This document shows, piece after piece, positions 6,391-50,400 of a stretch of DNA of 63,510 nucleotides (within the stretch, counting starts at the first letter, position 1; each line of letters starts with the position of its first letter). The position numbers were made by a program, and so were the translations under genes. Below the pieces are notes generated by a model that saw only the letters and a program-made list of their open reading frames with translations, was not told where the DNA came from and made no database searches. This stretch comes from Malacoraja senta (taxonomy: Eukaryota), in the NCBI GenBank assembly GCA_038087875.1, contig JAXLNO010001532.1:1-63510 (forward strand). The letters are read 5' to 3'.

Positions 6391-9300
6391 GTGGGGGGAA
6401 GGGAGATGGAGGGGGAGGGAGGGTGGGGAGGGGATGGGGTGAAGGGGAGGGGTGGAGGGAAGGGGGTAGGGGAGGGGTGGGGTGGAGGGAAGGGGGTAGG
6501 GGAGGGGCGGAGGGGAGGGGGTTTAGGGGAGGGAGGGTGGGGGAGGGCAGGGGGGTTGGGGGAGAGGAATGGGGGAGAGAGAGGGAGGGGGGGAGAGAGA
6601 GAGAGAGAGAGAGGGGGGAGAGAGAGAGAGAGGGGGAGAGCGAGAGAGGGGGAGAGAGAGAGATGGGGAGAGCAAGAGAGGGGGAGAGACAGAGAGAGCG
6701 AAATGCAACCATGCGTCACGCGTTCAGAATGTTCTGGAAATGAAACGTCCGTGTCTCATGCACGAAAGCTGTCGGCAGCTCCATGGAATACAGGGGAGGA
6801 CCCCCCCCCCCCCCGGGGAGGACCCCCCCCTACACACACACAGCGGGTCCGATTTAAGCTGTCAATGAAGACAGCAAATTTTTTTTAACTGTCTTTGAAA
6901 TTAAAAGTTAACGTTAAGGCAGGCTGGGGGGCCAGGTGCAAAGGCATTGTGAGGTCAGCGGGCGGGGCCGGGAAGCAGTTGGGCGATAAATTGTTGTCAA
7001 TAGCTCTGGAAATAATCGACCAAATTGATAGAGGATTGGATTTTTCANNNNNNNNNNNNNNNNNNNNNNNNNNNNNNNNNNNNNNNNNNNNNNNNNNNNN
7101 NNNNNNNNNNNNNNNNNNNNNNNNNNNNNNNNNNNNNNNNNNNNNNNNNNNNNNNNNNNNNNNNNNNNNNNNNNNNNNNNNNNNNNNNNNNNNNNNNNNN
7201 NNNNNNNNNNNNNNNNNNNNNNNNNNNNNNNNNNNNNNNNNNNNCTCCTCAAAAACCAGACGCAAACACGTGGAGATTTTTACAATTATGGTAGGGATTT
7301 AACTTATGATTTCATAAATCCACTCCTCGCAAAATTCAGTCGATTATTTCCCCAGATTTTGAATAAAATTGTTCACAAAACATAAAAAAATATTAAAATC
7401 GAACTGCTGCATGAGTCACAGTGCCAACTCACGCCACCGCTGCCCAGCTGCTGACGTTACAATAACAGAGACATTTTTACATCTTCTGGTAGAAATTTTC
7501 CTTATGATTTCAAATATCCAATCCTCTATACATTTGGTCGATTATTTCCCGAGATATTTACAAAAATTTATAACCAAACTGATATTTTAAAGAAATATTA
7601 AGGTTGCCCAGCTGCTGACCTCACAATGCCTTTGCACCTGGCCCAACTGCTTCCTGGCCCCGCCCGGCCCTGCCCCCCCAGCCTGCCTTGGTGTCCCCGC
7701 CCACTGACCTCACAATGCCTTTTCACCTGGCCCAACTGCTTCTTGGCCAGCCCGGCCTGGCCCCCCAGCCTGCCAGGTTGTTGATTCCATTGTTTTTCAT
7801 TGAATTGAATTGAATTATTTCTCAATTAACATAATTAATTCTTAACATTAATTTTTTATTTCAGAGTAAAAAAAAATAAAATGTGCTGTCTTCATTGACA
7901 GCTTAGATCGGACCCGCTGTGTGTGTGGGGGGGTGGGGTTGTGAGGGGGGGGGGGGTTCCTCCCCTGAATTCCATAGAGCTGCCGACAGCTATCGTGCAT
8001 GAGACGCAGACGCTTCATTTCCAGAACATTCTGAATGCGTGACGCACGNNNNNNNNNNNNNNNNNNNNNNNNNNNNNNNNNNNNNNNNNNNNNNNNNNNN
8101 NNNNNNNNNNNNNNNNNNNNNNNNNNNNNNNNNNNNNNNNNNNNNNNNNNNNNNNNNNNNNNNNNNNNNNNNNNNNNNNNNNNNNNNNNNNNNNNNNNNN
8201 NNNNNCCCCCACCCTCCCTCCCCTAAACCCCCTTCCCCCCCTTCCACCCCTCCCTCCACCCTATCCCCTCCCCACCCTCCCCCTNNNNNNNNNNNNNNNN
8301 NNNNNNNNNNNNNNNNNNNNNNNNNNNNNNNNNNNNNNNNNNNNNNNNNNNNNNNNNNNNNNNNNNNNNNNNNNNNNNNNNNNNNNNNNNNNNNNNNNNN
8401 NNNNNNNNNNNNCCCCACCCTCCCCCCCTCACCCTCCCTCTCCTCCTCCCCTCCACCCCCTCTCCCTCTGTCTCTTGCCCTTCTGTCTCTGCCCCTTTCT
8501 CTCTGTCTCTCCCCATTCTCTTTCTGCCCTCACTCTCTACCCCCCCCCCTCTCTAGATGTGCCTGCGAGTTGGGGCTATGCGTCAGTGGATAGGGCGGTT
8601 ATGGGGTAAAAGGAGGAAAATAATAATATTAATACATCAAGGGGAATAGTTAGCGTGTGTGCGGGGGGGTAGATAGTGTGTGTGACCCCGCATGCCACCG
8701 CCCCTCCCCCCAGCACCCCCCGTCCCCCGCAACCACACGTTGGGGGAACAGACCCAATGGGTCTGCACTTGATTTAGTTAAATATAAATAGTAAAGGCAT
8801 GGGAGAATTATGCCTATCTAAGAGATCGATCCCTTAGGTAGGCATAATTCTCCGTGCCTTTCATCCACAGTACTTGCAACACGCGAAGGTCTGTGCAGGC
8901 CACGTGCCGTCGGCGCTGCTTCAAGCCGTCAATGACAAGCGGGGCTGAAGGCAGCTGAAATTCTGCCTTTGCAGTACTGCGCATGCGCAGCAGCCTACTG
9001 CGCATGCGCAGCGCGAGTTTCTTGCTGGATTTTTAAAATATGGATTGTCATTATTTTAAGAGTATCTTAGGAAACAAAGAGAGAAGAATGGAGTTCGTGT
9101 ACCAATAATGTGGTAAGTACATTTCATGGTGCTTTATATTTTTAAATACCGTATTTCCCGGGGTGGGGGGAGAGCTCCTTTCACAGTGTTTGAGGAGTCT
9201 GGCCCAGGGTAAAGTTGCGGGGAGGGCAGGAGCGTTGTGAAGGAGGGGATCGGGGCCAGTAATCCACTTGCGACGCTCCGGGCACGGACCCACTGCATTG

Positions 9301-23400: not shown

Positions 23401-26400
23401 AGTGATTACAAAACCAGATCTGTTCGTGAAATCTGCAACTATCACCATTGTAAAGCAGCCGGAGTTCGTGACAGCAACTTATGGTTTTCTGCCTTTTGGA
23501 GTCAATTGTCGTATGTATCAGAAATAGAATAAAGCAATTCTTACTTGCTGCAGCTTTACAAGCCTATTAGCTCAATAGCACGCAGATATACAATGATCAA
23601 CAATACATAAATAAATAAATAATCAGCCAGTAATACCAGTTAACCAGACTGGACTATTTACAGAATTGTGTATAACCAAAATACGTCGTGTAACCTAAAA
23701 CAAAGTCTACAGTATATTGTTGCAGAGGTAGGTTTGTTATTAGTGTTGTGCAATGTGGTTCAAGAGCTTAATAGTTTCTGGAAAGAAGCCATTTTGAATC
23801 TGGAGGTCAGAGTTCTAAGACTCCTGTACCTTCTTCCTGATGGTTGTAATGAAATGAAAACGAGACCAGGGTGGCGTGGGTAATTAATTATATTGACTGT
23901 CTTTTTGAGACAGCACCTCCAATAGTTCCGTGTGATGGTGGAGGGGGGCAGGGGAGGGGGAATATTCATGATGGGTCAAGCAAGGTCAACCACTCTGCAG
24001 CCTCCTCTCTTGGGCATTCGAGTTACCGAGCCAGGCCATAATACAATGAGTATGATCTCTACTACTGCACAACTGTACAGGTTCAATAGAGTATTCGGTG
24101 ACATATCGGATCTCCTCAATCTTCTAAGAAAGTAGAGGCGTTGCTTTATTGCATCAATGTGCTAAGGAGATCATCGGTGATATGCACGCTCAGGAACGTG
24201 AAGCTATTGACTCTTTCCAGAGATGCAGATACCAGAAGAGCCTGTTAGATATATCCTATAACAGTGGTGACTTCTAATTGCTTTGTTATTTTTAATATCA
24301 AAATAAAGTTTAGTGTATTGGTATTCACAGCTAAGCAAAGTGTCAGTGTTCAGCTGAATTATAATTTTTAACTGAAAGAATTGCTGCTTTGGGGAATTAT
24401 TAAAAATTATTGTACAGATTTTCAGAAATTCTATAAAATGAGGCAAATGTCTTGCTGGAGATTATCCTTTCAATAAGCAGTAAAACAACAATATCTTCAT
24501 ACAATAGATTTTTTTTCTAAAGCAGATCACAAAGACTATCACTTACATTGTCATGCTGTCTATCTAAAATATTCTCCTCCTTAAACTTTGTCATGATATC
24601 AACATCTCGTTCATAATCTTTCACTTCATTTAGCGTCCTGGGAATGTAGGCCCTTTTGAACACCTAAAGAGAGAAAAACAAATGAAACCAACAATCATTT
24701 TTGCCTCACCTTCCACATCAGCCGTCGCATACAACATATAATCCTCCGACATTTTCGCCACCTCCAACGGGATCCCACCGCTGGCCACATCTTCACATCT
24801 CCTCCCCTTTCTGCATTCCGCAGAGACCGTTTCCTCCGTAACTCCCTTGTCAATTTGTCCCTTCCCACCCAAACCACCCCCTCCCCATGTACTTTCCCTT
24901 ACAACCGCAGGAAATGCTACACATGTCGCTTTACCTCCACTCTCGACCCCATCCAACGACCCAAGCAGTCTTTACAGGTGAGGCAGAGATTCACTAGTAC
25001 CTCCTCCAACCTCATCTATTGCATCCGCTGTTCTAGGTGTCAACTGCTCTACATCGGTGAGACCAAGCGCAGGCTTAGCGATCGCTTCGCCCAACACCTC
25101 TGCTCAGTTCGCAATAACCAACCTGATCTCCCGGTGGCTCAGCACTTCAACTCCCCCGCCCATTCCGAACCCGACCTTTCTGTCCTGGGCCTCCTCCATG
25201 GCCAGAGTGAGTCCCATCGCAAATTGGAGGAACAGCACTTCATATTTTGCTTGGGTAGTTTACACCCCAGCGGTATGAACATTGACCTCTCCAATTTCAG
25301 GTAGTCCTTGTTTTCTCCCTCCTTCTCTCTCCCCTTCCCAGCTCTCCCACAGCCTACTGTCTTCACCTCTTCCTTTCTTTTTCCCACCCTCCCCCCCCGA
25401 CATCAGTCTGAAGAAGGGTCTCGACCCGAAACGTCGCCTATTCCTTCGCTCCATAGATGCTGCCTCACCTGCTGAGTTTCTCCAGCTTTTTTGTCTACCT
25501 GCAACTTTTATATATAATCAGTAACACTGAACAGCACACTAATATGTATAACATAAATATATAGAAGTAGATAATATGCTCAAGGCAAAACTGCAACAGA
25601 AATACATCTGGAGAGCTTAGGAAGGTGAAAATACAATCAAATTCCACGACAAGATACACACCTCTTCATCTACTTTGTCTTGGTTGGATCGTTCCTCCTC
25701 TGTTCTATTTGCAGATAATTCCATTGCCTAATAACATAAGTAAAGCATCAGTTCTGTTAGACACACAACAAACAAGCAATTTCCTTCATTGCATATTTGT
25801 TTATGATGATAAATGATTATTTTGCAATACTCTTGTTCATTAAAGTTATTTGCAACAGAGGAGATTTCACACCAATTATCAAAAAGCTGAACACTTTTAA
25901 TCAATCGTACTTCTTTGGAAAGAGTCACAAGTAATTATAAATAATCCAAGAGCCACAAGGCTAAAAAATGCATTGACCAGAAAAGATAGTATTAGGAAAG
26001 ATGTGCAAATATAAAGACCTTAGGATTCACGTAGAAACCAAGTTAATAAATAAATGGCTTTATAACACGAGGCATGTAATACAAAGATACTATCCTGAAA
26101 GTCTTTAATAAATCATAGATTAAACACTTTGGTTATCAATATATAATTAAACCAATTATTTCAATTCAGGGAATGGCATGATATAAAAGACCCGTGAGAA
26201 TTTTAACGAGCCAGAAAAAAATTATTTGAATGAACCTAGGCACAAACAAATTTCAGATATTTACGAAGATATTAGTAAAATACTGGTGGGCAAAGTTAAC
26301 CCATAATGGGGCTATTCAAAAAGATGAGGAGTTTTGATAGGAAAATCCATTTAAATTGGCAGTAAGCAGTGGAGAATAATGGACGAAGGGTTCATGTCTT

Positions 26401-29400
26401 AATAACTCAACATTAGAAGTGCAAGAACTAAAAACAAATTCCTCGATATAAAGCAGGACAGACAGGTTCTGTTGAGAAATAGCAGTCACAGGTTTTAGAT
26501 CAAATATCTTTCATCAGAACTGGAAAGTGAGAAAACAAGTTAGTTTTTTAGCTCAGAGGAGCACGGAAGAATGGATAAAACTAATGGAATATTTCTGTAA
26601 TAGCGAAGTGTGTGTTGCCAAGGTGATTCCACTGTTTACAGAGCCATCTATTTGATATATTAATGAGAGCAGTTAGAGAAAGAGAAAACAATGGACATGT
26701 AAAAGTTGTGAAATGCTCATCTGAGCTGTTGCTAAAAGACAAAACCAAATGTAAATGCCAAGCAGATCAGACAGTGAAAAAAACTGATGTAATATTGCAG
26801 ATGGATATATTTTACATCAGAACTGGTCAATTCAGACACAACAAAAAAAGGTATCTGAAGTTGTTGAATTCAGAGACCACAACACCTGGATGTAAGATAA
26901 TGTTCTGTTCCTTAAGTTTACATTGCATTTCATTCAAACCGCACAGAAGGCCATTGACATATAGGTCAAAATGAGAGTGATGCGGAAAATTAGAGAGAGA
27001 TAACTGGTTGTCCTTGCAGACTGAATGCAGGTGCTCTGATCAGCAGTCAGCCAATCTGCATTTAAAGAAACTCTTTTGCTACAATCGGAACTATGGTTTT
27101 TAGCACATTTAAAAAATATAATTCTGGATATAGTTTCACAACCATTCTCATTCCTTTCATACCAAAAACCATTAAAAAAAATATCCTAAATTCTTTATGA
27201 TATAGTGGGGTATTTTGGCCATCAATGTAAGAAAAGACTGGATTTAATATCTTTCTCTTACATACATGACAATGGAAAAGGTGAAAATATCCATTATCAG
27301 ACCACTTACAAAAATGCTTGCACTTTATTTAAAATAGAGATGCGCCTTCATCTGTGTTGTTCAGTTAAAAACATCCAATTGCAAGCTTGTTTGAAAATTA
27401 AGGTTGAAATTTAAGTTAAATTATTAAAAGACAAAACATTAATGGATAAATAAATGTATTATGAGGACATGATCTAGTGTAGCCTTCGGGTGTAGTGTAC
27501 TAGGGATTATTGGAACAGAATAGTCAAGTCAAGTCACATTTATTTATATAGCACATTTAAAAAACAACTCTCGTTGGCCAAAGTGCTTTACATTTGTTAT
27601 AAGAATAGCATAAACAAAACAAACTACATACATATATACATGTAGCCCTCACTCAGAGGACGTCAGGAAAGGCTTGGGAGTATAGACATAAATTAAGCCA
27701 CAATTCTAAGAGACAAACATTGTTTTATATTTATCACACGTTTTTATAATGTTATAATCAAACAGTAAAATGCAGAGATTCAGAAAGTTGTGTTGCTAAG
27801 AATACAATAATTTTGTAGGGCTAATACTGCGAGATGAAGGTGGATACTACAGCTCCAGCAGAAGTGTGCAGGCGTAATTACAGTACGACAAACTTATGCT
27901 TGCAATTTGTATTCTCAGTATCTATAGGATTGTAATATGAGAAAAAATCAAAATGTGCAGCATTTTTGTAGCATATGAAGAAGTCATCTTGGTCAGGTAA
28001 TGTAATAATTTATTCCAAGTAGTGAATGAAAAATCACATCAAATTATTACTTGCTGATTGGAGCTACTATATAAATTAACCATACAATATCAGAGAGATG
28101 GGATATACAGTGGCTTGCAAAAGTTTTCATACCCCATGAACTTTTCCACATTTTGTCTCGTTACAACCACAAACGTAAAAGTATTTTATTGGGATTTTAT
28201 GTGATAGACCAACACAAAGTGGTGCATAATTGTGAAGTGGAAGGAAAATGATACATGGTTTTCAAATTTTTTTACAAATAAAAAACTGAAAAGTGTCGCG
28301 TGCAAAAGTATTCAGCCCCCCTAAGTCAATACTTTGTAGAACCACCTTTCGCTGCAATCACAGAGCTGCAAGTCTTTAGGGGTATGTCTCTACCAGCTTT
28401 GCACATCTAGAGACTGAAATTTTTGCCCATTCTTCTTTGCAAAATAGCTCAAGCTCAGTCAGATTGAATGGAGAGCGTCTGTGAAAGGCAATTTTCAAGT
28501 CTTGCCAGAGATTCTCAATTGGATTTAGGTCTGGACTTTGACTGGGCCATTCTAACACATGAATATGCTTTGATCTAAACCATTCCATTGTAGCTCTGGC
28601 TGTAGGTTTAGGGTCGTTGTCCTGCTGGAAGGTGAACCTCCGCCCCAGTCTCAAGTCTTTTGCAGACTCTAACAGGTTTTCTTCCAAGATTGCCCTGTAT
28701 CTTCCCATCAACTCTGACCAGCTTCCCTGTCCCTGCTGAAGAAAAGCATCCCCACAGCATGATGCTGCCACCACCATGTTTCACAGTGGGGATGGTGTGT
28801 TCAGGGTGATGTGCAGTGTTTGGTTTCCGCCACACATAGCGTTTTGCATTTAAGCCAAAAACTTCAATTTTGGTCTCATCTGACCAGAGCACCTTCCTCC
28901 ACATGTTTGCTGTGTCCCCCACATGGCTTGTGGCAAACTGCAAACGGGACTTCTTATGGCTTTTTTTCAACAATGGCTTTCTTCTTGCCACTCTTCCATA
29001 AAGGCACGATTTGTGGAGTGCACGACTAATAGTTGTCCTGTGGACAGATTCTCCCACCTGAGCAGTGGATCTCTGCAGCTCCTCCAGAGTTACCATGGGC
29101 CTCTTGGCTGCTTCTCTGATCAATGCTCTCCTTGCCCGGCCGGTCAGTTTAGGTGGACGGCCATGTCTTGGTAGGTTGCAATTGTGCCATACTCTTTCCA
29201 TTTTTGGATGATGGATTGAACAGTGCTCCGTGAGATGTTCAGCTTGGGATATTTGTTTATAACCTAACCCTGCTTTAAACTTCTCCACAACTTTATCCCT
29301 GACCTGTCTGGTGTGTTCCTTGGGCTTCATGATGCTGTTTGTTCACTAATGTTCTCTAACAAACCTCTGAGGCCTTCACAGAACAGCTGTATTTATACTG

Positions 29401-41400: not shown

Positions 41401-44400
41401 AGTTCTTCGGGCTAACGGAATCAAGGGATATGGGGAGAAAGCAGGAACGAGGTACTGATTTTGGATGATCAGCCATGATCTCAAAGGGCCGAATAACCTA
41501 CCCCTGCACCTATTTTCTATGTTTCTATTTTTGGGGGGGTTGGAGGCCTCCAAAGACATAATCCATTGCATCCATCATGAAGCGTCTTAGAACGGTTTCA
41601 GAAACTACAAAGCAAGTCCCTGCAGCACTGCATGTTATAACTGTTAAAATATAACAAGAAGAATATGTAGTCTACTTCAGCGATACTTTGGTTTATCTAT
41701 TACAAACAAAGAGTAATCTAATTATAAAATTAAAAAAACAAAATTCAGGCTACATGGAATTTGGTTGATCACATTTAGAAAAGATTTCTTCATTTTGCTG
41801 CTTTGTCCTTTAAAATTAACATACTTTTTTCAACAGATAGAAAAATTGTATGTAGCAGATTATGAACAAATGGCAAAGTAGATAGGTTTTATTTGATCAT
41901 TGTAGGTTTAGTTTTTATTATTGTCACATGTACCTTGGTACTGTGAAAAGTTTTTGTTGCATGCTATCCAGTCAAAGACTATACATGATTACAATCAAAC
42001 TATCCACAGTGTACAAATAAAGGATAAATAGTAAGATATTCCATTACATTAACATTTCCAATAGGAGCCTGCACACATTATAGATTGTGTGCAATATTTT
42101 AAAAGACAATGTAAAAGATTATAAATATAAATTGTATATGTTTGACATAAGTTTACATTTTCTCTAAGTTATTGAAACCAAACAATATCCTAATTAAAAG
42201 CAACATTGCAATGCACAATATTTCTTGAGCTTCACAAATACTTTATTTGTATTATTAATTAATACAACTATTACCTGTTCCACTGTAGCTCGGTCAGATT
42301 TATCTTTAACTCGATACCTAAAAAAACATGGCCGATAAAGAATACTAATGTAATTTATATCTTTCAGATTACATGGGTTCAAAGATATATTTAAAGTACA
42401 ATAACAATAAAAAAACTGCATGGAACTCAAAATTACAGATGGAATAATGATTTTTTAAAAATATTATCGTTTCACAATTCACTGGGTACGTGACCCGTGC
42501 TATATTTTGCTGGCAATTTGTACTTTATAAATAGTAGGTTTCTATATTCAGCACAATATCAGCTTTTATCCTATCTCAATAAAAACTAAAACTAAAATGC
42601 TGAAAGGAATGGTGGCATTGCAAGCCTAAGGCATAATCACCAGGACCAAAACATTCAAGAGAAAGGCCATTCATTATCTACTTGGAGGGTAAAAGGTAAC
42701 AGGAATGGCTATATGTCATGAAAACTGAATTGACATGGACGAGTCTTGCTGTCACTTTTCTATCTTCTGTAATCTCTCTTCCTTCAAAAAGTTCTTTGTG
42801 TGTTCAGTTCCATGACCTTTATAGTCAAGTTCATCCAAGTCTCCCCAACATCTATATATTTGCACCTCTGAAAGAAGTCAATAAACAGCATATGTAGGAG
42901 AAGGAAACCCAACTAGCAGTGAGGTTAAGCCAACACAAACAACACCATGAATCTGCTCTCTATATAAACCAAATCAAATGCTGAGGGAATCCAATATCCT
43001 TTAAGTATAGGATACGAGGAGCCTATGTACTGTTAAATGATGTTCATTAATTGCATCGATAAAAGCTGCCCAAATTGTAGTAATGCTTAGTTTTATTCTA
43101 TCAATATGAATTTTACTTACATATTTGTCTGTTTCTGCCTCGACTTCTCAGTTACTCTGTTTATCACAGAATCAGGAAAATTTAGTTTATCTGTCAAAAG
43201 AAAAGGAAAAGTCACATGTAATGGAAAGCCATTCCCTAAAAACTATTATTTTGATGATGGAACATTATAGCTTTTAAACATTTCATTCTCGCTCAACAAT
43301 CCCAGACTGAAAAAGCAATGATCTGTCCACTTTATTGACCTTTGACAAAACTACTCTGCATTTGATCAGCATTCACAATATAGTAGCTCAAGTTAATTCA
43401 GCCTATTTCTCTCCATCCCCCTGACAAAAACACATCATTTTCTGATTAGATGTTCAGTTTTTCTTTTGGAAACACAGTAGTATCTGACCAATTTAATGCA
43501 TAATAATTAAACTACATAAACAAACAAATTTAGTGAGATGTTTGATTTTTGGCCGGAAATCATCCCGTGGGCCAGATCAGACTCCTTCGCGGATCGGTTG
43601 CGGCCCGCGAGTTTGACACCCCTGGCCTATAGGAAGCGTTTCAGTACAAAACGGCAATCCAATCAGAAGCGACATGCATTCGCAAGGGGATTTTTGCCAT
43701 TTCAAACACCTAGTATAGGTAGGAGCTGTGTAAATTCTGTTTAAGTTGTTTAACTCTGTTAATTGTCAAACAGCAGTGATGACCTTGATGAATTACCGGT
43801 ATTATGCTTTGAAGATTCAGATAGTAGTGAATTTTTCAGATTTGAAGATTGGAATGCTTTCCTTTTTTGTAATCTGTAATCTTTGTTCCGTGCACACTTA
43901 AATGTTATTTTATTCTGAACGCTGTATTTATTTTATTACCGGAGTATACATTATCTGTTTTGCACTGGAAATGGCCGCGAATGGAAATGGCCACCACCAC
44001 GGCGAATGGAAATGGCCGCCACCACGGCACATGGAAATGACTGCCACCACGGCGAATGGAAATGACCGCCACCACGGCGAATGGAAATGACCGCCACCAC
44101 GGCGAATGGAAATGACCGCCACCACGGGGCATGGAAATGACCGCCACCACAGCGCATGGAAATGACCGCCACCACAGCGAATGTCTGTTTTTTATCTTTC
44201 AAAATTTCGCGACTCAAAATGGGGGTGCGTCTTCAACGCAGGTGCGTCTTCATTGCCGGGAAGTACGGCATATGAAGCAAATCAAACAGCTTACTGCTTG
44301 CAATATTAATAGAATTTGCAAGCCCACCATATAACAGGGGTTAAGATAGTCGTAAATTGTTCCCTATCAAACACTGAGAGGAGTTTTAATTGAGGTATTT

Positions 44401-47400
44401 TAAATTAAGAAGCTTTACAGAAAGATTTACTCATGCTAACAGAAAGATCTATAGGGAGTGGGTGCAGGGAGTAGATTCAAGTCAATTGATAGAAAGCTCA
44501 AAGAGGAGCAAAATATTAGTTCAGATTATAGTAGGAGTCTGGAACTCACTAGCTCACTTAGCACTAAATGTGGGACTTGCTAAAATGGCTGTGGCTTACT
44601 CCCAATGTTAGTTTGGGAGATAACATAATACAAATTTATACATTAAAAAAAAAGGCAATATATTTATTACTTGCTTACACATGTAAACATTTCTGAATTT
44701 AAAAAAACGTGAATAAAGCAATTTAAAAGTCATAATCTACAGGGGCAATGACAAAGAATTCGGGGTTGGGAACCCAAAGTCTATTTTTGATGTGCATTGC
44801 AAAGAAACAATTAGCCAAATGGCCTCCTTCCATACTTCAATTTACACAATTCTAAATAATATTTCAAATTAAAACTCACCAAGATTAATTTTATGTTCAA
44901 ATTTTCTCAAAGCCTTGTCTGGAGGTGCGTACATCTTTACTGAATTAAAGGAAGCTTGTCTATTTGCCTGAATGAAATAAATTGCAGCAGAAACTAGGAG
45001 TCACAATTTTTGGCACAAATTACAAGTAATCAAAATATGTACATTAGTAATAGATGTCCAATCTAATACTTGGACCATAAATGTATAACATTAATATAGT
45101 CTATGGAAATGTTCTATTAAAGCAAAGTATTAATCCACAAGAATATTTCAAACAAATATTAAAATGAAATAAAGACAGCCTAGGTTAGAATACATGTTGA
45201 CTTATCCAAAGTAGCTAGAAAATGCATTCTTTATTAACATGATGATCAACTTTATATCCTAAAGATATTTGTAAATCATGATCCAACATTGTTATTTAAG
45301 ATTTCTACATTTAGGATGTAAGTGCAAGCATTCTATAATATTTGAAGACGGTTACTAGCAAAATCTCTATTTTTTTTTAAATTGTAAGTGACTTGTGTTA
45401 GTTGTTTTAAATATAAAGTCCACATCTAATTTATTCTGTTTCTCACTATAAACAACCTAATACCCAGATTTACCACCAAGAGAGCATTGTGGCGGCCCCT
45501 GGTGGCTAGCTGATCGTGGTGCGAACCCTTGGCTCTGGGGGTTGGGTCATGTGACTTGGTTTGGCGGGGAGAGCAGGTCACGGGTCTCCCCTGGGGTATA
45601 TATACTGCTGGTAACTCCTTTGCCCCTTGTTGTGGTTCTGATAGCTGTTCTGTGATAACCTAATAAAGATCACTTTGTTTGACAACACGTGTCTCGCTAT
45701 ATTGGTGACCCCGACGATCCAAAAGAGTTATTTTGGATTTCAAAGATGAACGCTGCCAACGCTCAACCCGCCGTTGCCCCCGATCCAGCCCAACAAAACG
45801 CTGTTGCACTTAAGCTGCCGGTTTTCTGGACCTCGCAGCCCCAGGTGCAGTTCCAGCAGACCGAGGCCCAGTTCCACATCCTTCGAATCAAAGATCCTAT
45901 AGCAAGCAAGATAGTGCACTCCTGCTAAAACCAATGGGCTGACGTGTAGTACGCAACAAAGACGCAACGGAGCGGAACGTCAGCCTTTTCGTCGGCCATT
46001 TCAGTAAACCCGACCTGACGTTGTATATCCCTCGCAGTGTAATCAGCGTTGCGGGGGAACAGTTTGTGTGTGTGATGTAGTGTTAGATTCATGATTCATA
46101 ATTCTGTTACTTTTTGTTAATGATTAATATGATAATAAATTATAATTCTGTTAATTTTCTTTTTTAATGATTTGGATTCAAAGCCCCGGGATTGGGATCG
46201 GACTGTGCAAGGGTGGAGGGGGCACTGAGGGCAAAGAGGCTGTGCCCACACGGCAGTGTAAAAGGGGAGACCTTTCCAATCCACGCTTCCCTCTTTCTGT
46301 CTCCACTGTGCCTTTTCAAAATTGGTTGTTTATTTTTTCCGCAAAAAGAGAAAGGCGGAGTGAGCGAGAGTGAGGGGCCGAGGCTTGCACCGACCGACCG
46401 AGTGAGCGAGCGAATGTAGCCCAAGGAAAGTCCACCTGCTCCCCACCCCTTCTGCCCCAACAAATAACAAATGTAGCTTGCAAGATGCTGAGACCTGCGA
46501 ACAGGGAGCAGCTGCACGTTGTGAACTATGTGGAGGACTATTTGGATTCAGTCTCTGCCTTTCGATCTCCAGAGGAACGTTTCTCCGAGGGAAATCGATG
46601 CTCAATACCAAGGTAAGAACTGGGGTACGAGCCCGACCCCCACCAAACTGCTGCAGCACTGGGGCGGGCCTAACAAAAGAGCCGTTCCAGCACTCAGCCA
46701 TTTTGGCAGAAAGAGGAATAAATGTCCTACAGTCAGCGACGCAGAGGAGTAGTGAAGAGCAGACCGGTCCGGAGTTTGGGAGCCGGGCAGCGAGCGTAAT
46801 GGGAGGAAGAAATCGAAGGGCCGTCTGTTCTCAGCTTCGGATCTCATGCCCGCCAACTTTCCCCCGTCAGTGAGTCTCTTTAACGGGGCAGAGAGAAAAT
46901 GAGGAGAAGATTTTTACCAAAGATCTTTGATTTTTACGAGGATGTTTCCGTAACCGGCTTCCGTCTCCGTACTAGTATCATTGCTCAGCTATGACGGACA
47001 AAGATGTCGGAGATGGAAGCCGGATATGGAAATGGGGCCGAAGATTACCCATGAATCTGCCCATGACCCTACTACGTCTTTATCGTGGAGTGGGCTATCT
47101 TGCTTGCTATAGGATCTTTGCTTCGAATCACAGCCGATGACACCGCTACTATTACGTGGTCGGCGCGCTCTATCAGGAGACGGCCGGTCGCTTGGTTCCT
47201 TACCAACGTGAGCCGCCAGCTGCCGATAAGTATGAGGGTCCCTTTCGGGTGCTGCAGCATGGACCTACTACTTTTGTTTTGGACATGGGGGGTCGGCGTG
47301 AGACTGTGTCTGTGACTCGTTTGAAGCTGGCCCATTTGGACCTTAGCGAGCCAGTACAGGTGGCCCAGCCTCGTCGTCGGGGGTGTCTGCTGTCCCGGGT

Positions 47401-50400
47401 GCTCCCTAGCTCGTCTGTACCGGGCTGGTCCACTGTGCGTGGGGATGTGTGCACGAGGTCCGGCCGCCTCGTTCGTCTTCCCTTTCGGTTCCGTGCCTCC
47501 GGTTCTTTGGGGGGGGATCCTGTAGCGGCTCCTGGTGGTTAGCCACTCGTAGTGGGAACCCTCGGCTCTGGGGGTTGGGTCATGTGACTTGGTTTGACCG
47601 GAAGAGCGGGTCACGGGTCTCCCCTGGGGTATATATACTGCTGGTAACTCCTTTACCCCTCGTTGTGGTTCTGAGAGCTGTTCTGTGTTAACCTAATAAA
47701 GATCACTTTGTTTGACAACACGTGTCTCGCTATAGCATCTTTATTGTTTTGCATCACCTGTTGGCTGTTGTTCTTTGAGGCATTATAACGTTTGGTGAGG
47801 TCTCCATCACAAGACTCCCAGTCCCAATCTTCACCATCATCACTCTCAATAAGAAATTCCTCTTCATCTGAGTTATTCAGTTTCGGAATCTCAATCTTCT
47901 TCTCTGTCTTTCCAACTTCCTCTAGTGTTTTCTCAGCACAGCCACCATCACTAAAAAAAAACAAATTGCATTTGGTGTCTTTAAAATAAAACAAAATTGT
48001 CACATGAGGAGGCTGTAGGACATTTGATTTAAAACTTTATCACAGCAGTTGGGTTTTCAGGAACTAATAAAGAGGAAAATTGCAAGGAGGTACCATGGCA
48101 ATGGTAGGAGATGCCAGCGGCACAGCCAGTTAAACTGCTGCCTTCTAGCTCCAACATCCCAAGTTCAAATCTGACTTCTGGTGCTGTGTCTGTGGAGTTT
48201 AAATGTTCTCTCTTTGACCATGCGAAAATGCGCAGGTTAGCAAGTTAATCAGTCACTCCAATTGCCCCAAGTGTGTAGCTGTGTGCATTATAAGTACCTG
48301 AAGGGAAATAAGGTGACTAGAGAGAGAATAGGGGCCAACAGAATCCTAAGTGGAGCCGCACGAGATACGCATAATCCGCAATGCGTATTTCTCCATTATT
48401 GCCATAGAGGGAGTGCAGAGAAGGTTCACCAGACTGATTCCTGGGATGTCAGGACTGTCTTATGAAGAAAGACTGGATAGACTTGGTTTATACTCACTAG
48501 AATTTAGGAGATTGAGAGGGGATCTTATAGAAACTTACAAAATTCTTAAGGGGTTGGACAGGCTAGATGCAGGAAGATTGCTCCCGATGTTGGGGAAGTC
48601 CAGGACAAGGGGTCACAGCTTAAGGATAAGGGGGAAATCCTTTAAAACCGAGATGAGAAGAACTTTTTTCACACAGAGAGTGGTGAATCTCTGGAACTCT
48701 CTGCCACAGAGGGTAGTCGAGGCCAGTTCATTGGCTATATTTAAGAGGGAGCTAGATGTGGCCCTTGTGGCTAAAGGGATCAGAGGGTATGGAGAGAAGG
48801 CAGGTACGGGATACTGAGTTGGATGATCAGCCATGATCATATTGAATGGCGGTGCAGGCTCGAAGGGCCGAATGGCCTACTCCTGCACCTAATTTCTATG
48901 TTTCTATGTTTCTATGTTTTAACCGTGGAGAAAAACATGAAGGCGAGGGAACTTGGAACAGTTAAGATATATTAAGGTAGATATCCAAGGGCTGATCTCA
49001 TATATCCATGGACACTGGAAAACTAGAGAAGAAACTGCAGGTGGGCTGGCTGAGATATACGAATCGTCATTAAGCACAGGCAAGGTGCTGCAATGTTGGA
49101 GGGTAACTAATACTGTGCTTCTGCTTAAGTGGTTTGGCAAGGAAAAACCTGGGAACTATAGACTGGCAATGCTAATATCTGTGGTACTGCTTAGGGATAG
49201 TCAGAATGGTTTGGCTGTGGGCAATCGTGTATTATGAATTTGATCGAGTTTTATGAAGTAACAAAGAGGTTGGCAAAGGCAAGGGCGTAGACATTGTCTA
49301 CATGGATTTCAGCACGACCTTTGATATGATTTCATATGTTAGGCTGCTCTAGAAGGTTACATCACGTGGGATCCAGGGAGAGTTGGATACACAATTGGCT
49401 TAATGGAAGTAAGTAGATGGCGGTGGTGGTGGAAGGTTGTTTATCTGACTGGAGGCTTGTGATTATGAGTGTGCCTCAGGGATTAGTGCTGAGTCCATTG
49501 GTGTTTGCAGGGCTCTCACTTAACTTTTTTTCCCTGTTGCCAGCCGGGCAACCTTGGCAGCTTTTTAGGTTGCCAAATGACAGTTTAGGTGGTCATTTAA
49601 GATGGTTTGCATGACACGTGCGACAATGTGCTCGGACAAAGTGCGTAGTTACCAGTCGGAATTGTGCTCAATGAAGCATTCACATATTATTTCTGCTTCA
49701 AATAAAGCCACAAATTAAACATATTCACCAATCAAGACATGATATATACCACAAAACATGCAGCAAAATTATAATACAGTATCTCAACTTTTTACACATT
49801 GCAATTAATGCAATTTCTATTAGTTCTTTCCACTTCCAAACAAAATTGTGGTTGGATTATTCAGCGTATGATCAACCTGTGTCAATAAATCCAGGACCAT
49901 GGTAACATATATGCTTAACCATGCACACTAGATTGATGCAAGCATGTTTTCTGTGAAGGACCGAAAATTACCATGACATGGCCATAGCATGGGTGGTTAT
50001 TGCTATTGGCACAGAAACACTCTCGCTTCCCACATAATTTATCCATAACAAACTATACAGGTTGCATGGAAATTTCTAAAGGCATTTTATGATAATAGCT
50101 GTTAAAACCGACTATATCCATCTGACAGGTTAAACATTACACTAACTGACAAGAGATGGCCAAAGGACATAACTGCAGCAAATGTTCTTTTGGTAATATG
50201 TTTAAAGGTGTCAAAACGCCACATTACCGGACATTCAGATTAGATGTACGTGATGTGAACAGCAATGAAGATACCCAGTTTGTACGCGCCAGATTTAAAA
50301 ATATATAATTGATAAACGCTGTTTCCATCATTCCCACTTCAGAATTAACGTTAAAATTTCAACTGAAATATCTCCTGACCAAATTTGTGATGTATATAAC

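Follow-up and report, generated by a model that had tools for sequence, protein, structure and literature searches.

A multicopy skate DNA transposon that carries a captured 5' segment of ING1

A 63.5-kb stretch of skate DNA (contig JAXLNO010001532.1 of the Malacoraja senta assembly GCA_038087875.1), which is referred to below in its entirety as the window, contains at positions 45889-47120 a 1232-bp element that we interpret as a non-autonomous Pack-TIR, a cut-and-paste transposon in which a segment of the gene ING1 was captured once, at the DNA level, and then spread with the transposon that carries it. We put the probability of this interpretation at about 0.92. Features by which a Pack-TIR is recognized are found: terminal inverted repeats (TIRs) and target site duplications (TSDs) at both ends, an identifiable parental locus, and capture at the level of DNA. 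The family is also multicopy, since at least two copies exist which have common capture junctions and different TSDs.

Results

The ends of the element are formed by a left TIR (45889-45922, plus strand), which starts with CAAAGATCC, and a right TIR (47087-47120, minus strand). Each is 34 nt long; the two match at 32 of 34 positions and are identical over their first 26 nt. This 26-nt core is found in the window at the two ends of the element and nowhere else, even if as many as 3 mismatches are allowed, and the number of occurrences expected by chance is 0 (100 shuffles). The flanking TSDs (45881-45888 and 47121-47128) are copies of the 8-bp sequence CTTCGAAT and are identical at 8 of 8 positions; a repeat finder reports inverted arms at 45882-45922 and 47087-47127, which take in this partly palindromic duplication. 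The longest open reading frames (ORFs) of the element, at 117-131 amino acids, have no Pfam match in a profile search, and it is therefore concluded that no transposase is encoded. An initial annotation, made from the letters of the window alone, had described a 1232-bp element with 34-bp TIRs, a perfect 8-bp TSD and no transposase, and the present results agree with it in each respect. Runs of N at 7048-7244, 8049-8205 and 8285-8412 of the window were left untouched.

The backbone of the transposon is divided by the captured segment into a left arm of 283 bp (45889-46171, plus strand), which has an AT-rich inner part and no similarity to ING1 loci, and a right arm of 231 bp (46890-47120, plus strand), ahead of which the similarity to ING1 ends at 46889. 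The intervening positions, 46172-46889, align along their whole length to the 5' region of ING1 in public skate assemblies, from which the parent locus was taken. The identity is 93.8% over 728 columns with 7 gaps for Leucoraja erinacea (L001:2693-3414; GCA_028641065.1), 94.0% over 728 columns for Amblyraja radiata (L012), and 90.9% over 739 columns for Rhinoraja longicauda (L013). On the plus strand, the segment comprises 313 bp of 5' untranslated region (5'UTR; 46172-46484, aligned to L001:2693-3000), the first coding exon (46485-46612, aligned to L001:3001-3136, with the ING1 start codon at L001:3001), and the initial 277 bp of intron 1 (46613-46889, opening with the donor GTAAGA and aligned to L001:3137-3414). 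In the parent, the corresponding lengths are 308 bp for the 5'UTR and 278 bp for intron 1, and coding exon 1 is matched in full. The GC-rich flanks of the coding piece, which had at first been called 5'UTR-like and intron-like, are on this evidence truly the 5'UTR and intron 1 of ING1, and the similarity to the ING1 locus extends well past the edges of the exon on both sides. Because the homology is unbroken from the 5'UTR through the exon and into intron 1, the segment was captured at the DNA level and is not a retrocopy, which is what the initial annotation had proposed.

The coding piece had been read as the N-terminus of ING1 encoded by its first coding exon, and this identification stands, but the exon is no longer intact. 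Positions 46485-46550 encode 22 amino acids, with an identity of 19/22 to the ING1 N-terminus by BLASTP, and positions 46552-46611 encode a further 20 amino acids in a frame shifted by one (18/21, BLASTP), directly after which comes the donor G/GTAAGA at 46612/46613. Alignment of the DNA to L001 traces the frameshift to the loss of 5 bp after 46550, where the parent has AATCG, and places a second deletion, of 3 bp, near 46586 in Leu-Met codons.

Searches of Pfam and the Protein Data Bank with the pieces of 20-22 amino acids and with a 43-amino-acid ORF gave no match, the queries being too short. A phmmer search with the 43-amino-acid ORF against 1.84 billion representative sequences returned, at a borderline E value of 9e-4, a predicted protein (P0002) which consists of the ING1 N-terminus followed by read-through into the intron. 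Residues 1-45 of P0002 retrieved 121 proteins in a word-indexed search, the best of which are named inhibitor of growth protein 1 by NCBI; the best matches that bear this name span mammals, birds, frogs, ray-finned fishes and cartilaginous fishes, and their clusters hold many sharks, rays and skates. Read-through proteins that contain exon 1 alone bear the precomputed label PF12998 (ING). Many of these predictions have "...YQG" where true ING1 has "...YQ(E/D)", and the point of divergence therefore marks the boundary of exon 1, which coincides with the position of the donor in the element. The same boundary is found in mRNA contigs from skates, which read CCAAG/ACATCC into exon 2 where the genome and the element both read CCAAG/GTAAGA. 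Since the mRNA is spliced exactly at the retained donor, the donor of the element is the true donor of ING1 exon 1, as had been supposed, and the intron has been kept. No other ING1 exon is detected in the window by tblastn with skate ING1.

The position of the captured segment relative to the start of transcription can be read from two RNA contigs (L005 and L009), in which a cap-switch oligonucleotide is followed by genomic ING1 sequence that begins 47 and 38 nt before the capture junction. ING1 transcription therefore starts about 40-50 bp ahead of the captured piece, which does not include the promoter. The ING1 promoter is located just upstream of the captured segment in L001, where CRE-, octamer- and NRF1-like motifs are seen by eye. 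ING1 and a cysteinyl-tRNA-synthetase-like gene (Pfam tRNA-synt_1e) are arranged head to head in little skate (L001:1-857), as they are in catshark, white shark, basking shark and stingray, and this arrangement is conserved across elasmobranchs; there is no sign of the synthetase-like gene in the window.

The detection of further copies makes use of a second ORF, which starts at an ATG in the left arm, 5-6 nt before the capture junction, and runs through the captured 5'UTR. It encodes 68 amino acids in the window (46167-46373) and 74 in parent-like copies (L004:145-369), with no function implied. The 74-amino-acid version, used as a search query, leads to a protein (P0146) on the contig L017, and this contig contains a second full copy of the element (L017:942-1713). 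The second copy has the same TIRs, left and right capture junctions identical to those in the window, and a TSD that is perfect but of different sequence (GTGACACC); a 404-bp internal deletion has removed its ATG, exon and donor. Because the two copies have common junctions and different TSDs, the capture took place once and the chimera then transposed. The structure of TIRs and TSD is also reproduced by this copy in an independent assembly. The L017 insertion is found in two further samples (L018 and L019), and thus in three independent sample assemblies in all. These two were considered as further copies and rejected as the same insertion, and a separate candidate (P0144/L014) was rejected because it represents the parent locus from another sample.

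The age of the capture can be estimated relative to the divergence of the skates from which the parent locus is available. Over 712 ungapped columns, the element differs by 4.5-4.6% from the Leucoraja and Amblyraja parents. The divergence between these two parents is 0.42%, and their divergence from Rhinoraja is 2.5-2.7%. The element alone differs at 24 sites and Rhinoraja alone at 10, while 6 sites group Leucoraja with Amblyraja against the element and Rhinoraja, and 0 sites support either other grouping. When L017 is added to give a set of five sequences over 289 columns, 4 sites set Leucoraja and Amblyraja apart from Rhinoraja and the two transposon copies. A further 2 sites link the transposon copies to each other alone. 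Changes that are confined to Leucoraja and Amblyraja, and that appear neither in the transposon copies nor in Rhinoraja, place the capture, as judged from the aligned sequences, before the Leucoraja/Amblyraja split. Since the capture, evolution has been about 3 times faster in the transposon copies than in the parent.

Left-arm sequence is also found in transcript assemblies. Six Logan RNA-seq contigs which contain intact ING1 (L002, L004, L007, L008, L015 and L016) start at their 5' ends with sequence of the left arm instead of the genomic 5'UTR; the arm accounts for the first 36-190 nt of these contigs and is joined to ING1 at the exact capture junction. At least three variants of the left arm occur at the junction (the L004 type, the L007 type and that of the window), and the L004 and L007 types differ at about 10% of positions. 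Downstream of the junction the six contigs are identical to the parent, and over the first 104 nt the window copy is identical to it as well. This identity between parent and copy is enough to produce chimeras in assembly, and the contigs in which arm and ING1 mRNA are joined are probably artefacts of this kind, generated by de Bruijn (short-read) assembly. The contigs do prove that reads spanning the junction are present in several independent samples. The possibility that the transposon resides in the real 5'UTR of ING1 in some individuals was considered and rejected as unnecessary, since the three or more arm variants and the 104 identical nucleotides suffice. Contigs of ING1 fused to the arm, present in public short-read transcript assemblies, could mislead the annotation of the ING1 5'UTR.

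The arms themselves have several further features. The left arm is kept in L017 and at the 5' ends of the six RNA contigs, and its ratio of observed to expected CpG is approximately 1.1-1.3, compared to 0.43 for the window. A diverged tandem duplication of about 47 bp (ATAATTCTGTTA...TTAATGATT, twice) occupies 46098-46172 in the AT-rich inner part of this arm, and is also present in L017. The right arm is likewise kept in L017, with an identical junction. It contains a subterminal inverted repeat at 46945-47032, also kept in L017, whose 25-nt arms are 88% complementary and whose hairpin has a DNA folding energy of -25.3 kcal/mol (z -5.4 compared to shuffles). A search of Rfam gives only sub-threshold chance matches, the one to this hairpin being to mir-74, which is miRNA-precursor-like, at 23.6 bits compared to a gathering score of 57. 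The hairpin is probably a subterminal repeat bound by transposase and not an RNA gene. A shared subterminal motif, ATGGGC(T/A)G, which was noticed by eye, was dropped as not significant.

The right arm also contains what looks like the remnant of a nested insertion. At 46910-46937, a 12-bp perfect palindrome, CAAAGATCTTTG (46918-46929), is flanked by a perfect 8-bp direct repeat, ATTTTTAC. The palindrome can be resolved into two TIR tips of 8 nt each that overlap in GATC, a self-complementary sequence which forms TIR positions 5-8. A scan for an 8-bp repeat followed by CAAAG...CTTTG and the same repeat finds, within the window, this site and the whole element only, and finds nothing in 20 shuffles. 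Since the palindrome is present in L017 too, it is older than the spread of the family. It looks like what is left of an insertion into the ancestral element by an element of identical termini, which was subsequently lost by excision or abortive repair.

The element is itself nested inside a small, internally deleted long terminal repeat (LTR) retroelement. The LTR-like repeats of this host (45488-45701 and 47521-47734, plus strand) are direct repeats of 214 nt and are 92% identical to each other. Between the upstream repeat and the insertion site there is a fragment of a gag-like ORF (45746-45886, plus strand; weak DUF7041 match, profile positions 1-21, E 0.01), which is cut by the insertion. 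If the element and one copy of the TSD are ignored, the gag-like frame continues past the insertion site as ...FHILRI/TADDT..., followed after one frameshift by YYYVVGAL. The divergence of 8% between the host LTRs is greater than the 3.4% on the element's own branch, and is therefore compatible with insertion of the element into the retroelement. Neither the arms nor the TIRs recur in the rest of the window, and an empty paralogous site of the host retroelement is likewise absent from it.

Elsewhere, the window is rich in repeats, and no host gene is detected in it. Its other ORFs include a Penelope-like GIY-YIG ORF, a fragment of a Tc1/Sleeping-Beauty-like transposase with a helix-turn-helix (HTH) domain, and several LINE reverse transcriptase (RT) ORFs, these mobile-element fragments (GIY-YIG, Tc1 HTH, LINE RT) being located at 24855-25304, 28608-29330, 180-1394 and 55364-55903. 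Short interspersed repeats are common to the window and to skate genomic loci, with up to 96% identity. A minisatellite of at least seven tandem 25-nt units (GCGAATGGAAATGRCCGCCACCACG-like) lies at 43952-44201, about 1.7 kb upstream of the element.

Discussion

The sequence of events that would produce the observed structure can be outlined as follows. The interior of a progenitor element would have been replaced once by 718 bp copied from ING1, which take in the greater part of the 5'UTR, the first coding exon and the opening 277 bp of intron 1. This replacement may have occurred during the repair of a double-strand break or gap inside the progenitor, by template switching into the 5' region of ING1, a route that follows the models of gap filling, or of fork switching plus transposition, that have been put forward for animal Pack-TIRs (PMC8277862). 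The left junction permits 0-2 nt of microhomology (TT). A transposase acting in trans, which recognizes TIRs of 33-34 bp and makes target duplications of 8 bp, would then have mobilized the chimera into several copies, of which the window copy would have landed in an LTR retroelement that was already deleted, and another elsewhere. In the window copy, we infer that the ING1 segment is a passenger without function, because it has no promoter or transcription start and its exon is frameshifted.

Several points weigh against this account. The parent locus is taken from public skate assemblies and not from the window's own genome. The arm-to-ING1 contigs show that the junction exists in reads, and not how the copies are transcribed. 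No bare copy of the backbone, by which the mechanism and the junction microhomology might be judged, is among the loci fetched, and beyond the element in the window the TIR occurs there only in L017-L019. No autonomous partner was found; the window ORFs that were scanned gave only RT, Tc1 HTH and GIY-YIG domains.

Other explanations of the captured segment must also be considered. Two copies of the transposon may once have flanked ING1 exon 1 at a distance of about 720 bp from each other, the first close behind the transcription start and the second in intron 1, with the outer ends of the pair then used together in a single macrotransposition. The extent of the captured piece, from about 40-50 bp past the transcription start to the early part of intron 1, corresponds to the open 5' region which P-like elements prefer (PMC7776569), and an element with the same termini has been inserted into this element at least once. 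A macrotransposition is nevertheless quite unlikely, because neither the inner junctions (46171/46172 and 46889/46890) nor the present ING1 loci have the expected remnants: no TIR or TSD remnant is found at the former, and no transposon remnant or TIR around the segment in the ING1 loci of the three skates. A simple retrocopy would be intronless and would have a poly(A) tail, whereas here the intron is kept and exon 1 alone is present; a chance inverted repeat conflicts with the expectation of 0 occurrences of the TIR core, and an assembly artefact with the second copy, which has another TSD and is present in three independent sample assemblies. The probability of these three possibilities taken together is practically negligible.

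A different question is whether the element has a function, either as a mobile first exon whose donor makes chimeric transcripts or as the source of an ING1 N-terminal peptide. A consensus donor, 45 codons and an ATG were part of the ancestral capture, sequences of the arm are present in the RNA-seq assemblies of several samples, and the arm ATG opens the 74-amino-acid ORF across the junction in parent-like copies. Against this, the window copy is frameshifted and L017 is without the exon altogether, the captured piece has no promoter or transcription start, the branch leading to the element evolves about 3 times faster than the parent, and no spliced product of a transposon copy is found, all of the spliced contigs carrying parent sequence. 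A functional role is accordingly very unlikely.

The superfamily to which the element belongs is less clear than its structure: a little under half of the probability is assigned to P, about two fifths to hAT, and the remainder to other superfamilies. If it is a P element, it would be mobilized by a THAP9-like transposase, and the palindrome in the right arm would be a P-type donor footprint in which the tips of the TIRs were joined at GATC. P cleavage leaves the tips of the TIRs at the donor site. The cut of the P transposase is made inside the TIR, with a stagger of 17 nt (PMC7776569, PMC10983969), and the 8 nt of each TIR that the putative footprint keeps fall within this stagger. The palindrome fits two origins, however, joining of P-type donor ends and abortive gap repair with annealing at microhomology, and a deletion of the latter kind could yield the same palindrome in any superfamily. 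In hAT excision, on the other hand, hairpins form on the flanking DNA and no transposon ends are left behind (PMC5499845), so that a remnant made of TIR tips would need some other origin if the element belonged to hAT.

The dimensions of the ends bear on the same question. All three insertions have 8-bp TSDs (CTTCGAAT, GTGACACC and ATTTTTAC), which is compatible with either superfamily. The CAAAG tip of the TIR fits the hAT pattern Y-A-R-N-G, which counts against P, and two of the three TSDs (CTTCGAAT and ATTTTTAC) fit the hAT pattern nTnnnnAn, although the third (GTGACACC) does not. The TIR length of 33-34 bp in both copies is near the 31 bp of Drosophila P and outside the 10-25 bp that is usual in hAT (PMC3942097). 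Subterminal inverted repeats are present, and together with the lengths of TSD and TIR they are compatible with P, while not being exclusive to it. P insertions cluster at promoters, which would place such elements beside first exons (PMC7776569), but no THAP or P transposase is linked to these TIRs, and the TIR of the zebrafish P-like element Pdre2 (13 bp, CATACCTGTCAAC) is unlike that of the present element. In favour of hAT, the CG-containing subterminal motif TCCGT/ACGGA is repeated in the arms in the manner of Ac-type subterminal repeats, with 5 copies compared to 0.25 expected, an enrichment that is inflated by the CpG-poor background; hAT is also the commonest carrier of animal Pack-TIRs, accounting for 208 of 370 (PMC8277862).

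The element joins the known category of animal Pack-TIRs and does not constitute a new one. A survey of 100 animal genomes (Tan et al. 2021, Nat Commun, PMC8277862) reported 370 Pack-TIRs, mostly hAT and Tc/mariner, in which the median captured size is 224 bp and exonic sequence is over-represented. Only 4 of the 370 are multicopy (three from frog and one from alligator), in addition to one fly family, and the multicopy cases favour GC-rich regions. The initial annotation regarded such capture as much less documented in vertebrates than in plants, but Pack-type capture by TIR transposons had already been documented in vertebrates by this survey. Like the animal Pack-TIRs described there, the skate element has as its interior a fragment copied from the host whose parent can be identified, encodes no transposase and is flanked by TSDs, and the transcription of their copies has its counterpart in the arm sequences present in RNA-seq assemblies. 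It further resembles such elements as Pack-hAT-N8_XT, a rare multicopy Pack-TIR of Xenopus tropicalis which carries the 5'UTR of CAPSL (PMC8277862), in having several copies with different TSDs and in having captured a GC-rich 5' gene region.

The differences from these cases define what is new. The host is a cartilaginous fish (skates are not named among the species of the survey, in which the word "shark" is absent); the capture, at 718 bp, exceeds the median of 224 bp; the whole of a first coding exon is present, together with its donor and part of the following intron; and the family is old, predating the split between genera, whereas the published cases were selected as young. An old, multicopy family in a cartilaginous fish, with a captured 5' module of 718 bp that includes the entire first coding exon and its donor, is thus the novelty of the present finding.

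Similar comparisons may be made to systems outside the animal Pack-TIRs. Plant Pack-MULEs are biased in their acquisition to the 5' ends of genes. They have in common with the ING1 element capture at the DNA level (transduplication) between TIRs followed by amplification, and their acquisitions are also biased to GC-rich sequence (as noted in PMC8277862). Pack-MULEs have long TIRs and 9-bp TSDs, while the ING1 element belongs to another superfamily, with 8-bp TSDs, TIRs of 33-34 bp and one captured fragment seen. With Drosophila P and zebrafish Pdre2 it has in common the 8-bp TSD, a TIR length near the roughly 31 bp of Drosophila P, subterminal inverted repeats, the occurrence of internally deleted, non-autonomous copies and a putative donor remnant of TIR tips within the 17-nt stagger; it differs from both in that there is no similarity in TIR sequence, no linked THAP transposase, and a tip which is hAT-like.

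The finding extends the phenomenon of Pack-TIR capture to cartilaginous fishes, and it provides a clean case of mobility after capture, in which the parent locus is available in three species, the junctions are exact, two TSDs are found and the event has a relative date. It may also be conjectured, although this is somewhat unlikely, that a single P-like or hAT lineage in skates repeatedly captures segments just downstream of transcription starts (5'UTR, first exon, splice donor and the beginning of intron 1) in different genes and thereby spreads mobile first exons. If this were true, the 5'-biased acquisition of Pack-MULEs would have its counterpart among vertebrates in such recurrent capture of 5' ends, and the capture would be linked to targeting near promoters or to a switch of template into open 5' regions. 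Skates would then be a natural system in which to study why 5' ends are captured, and whether first exons are shuffled.

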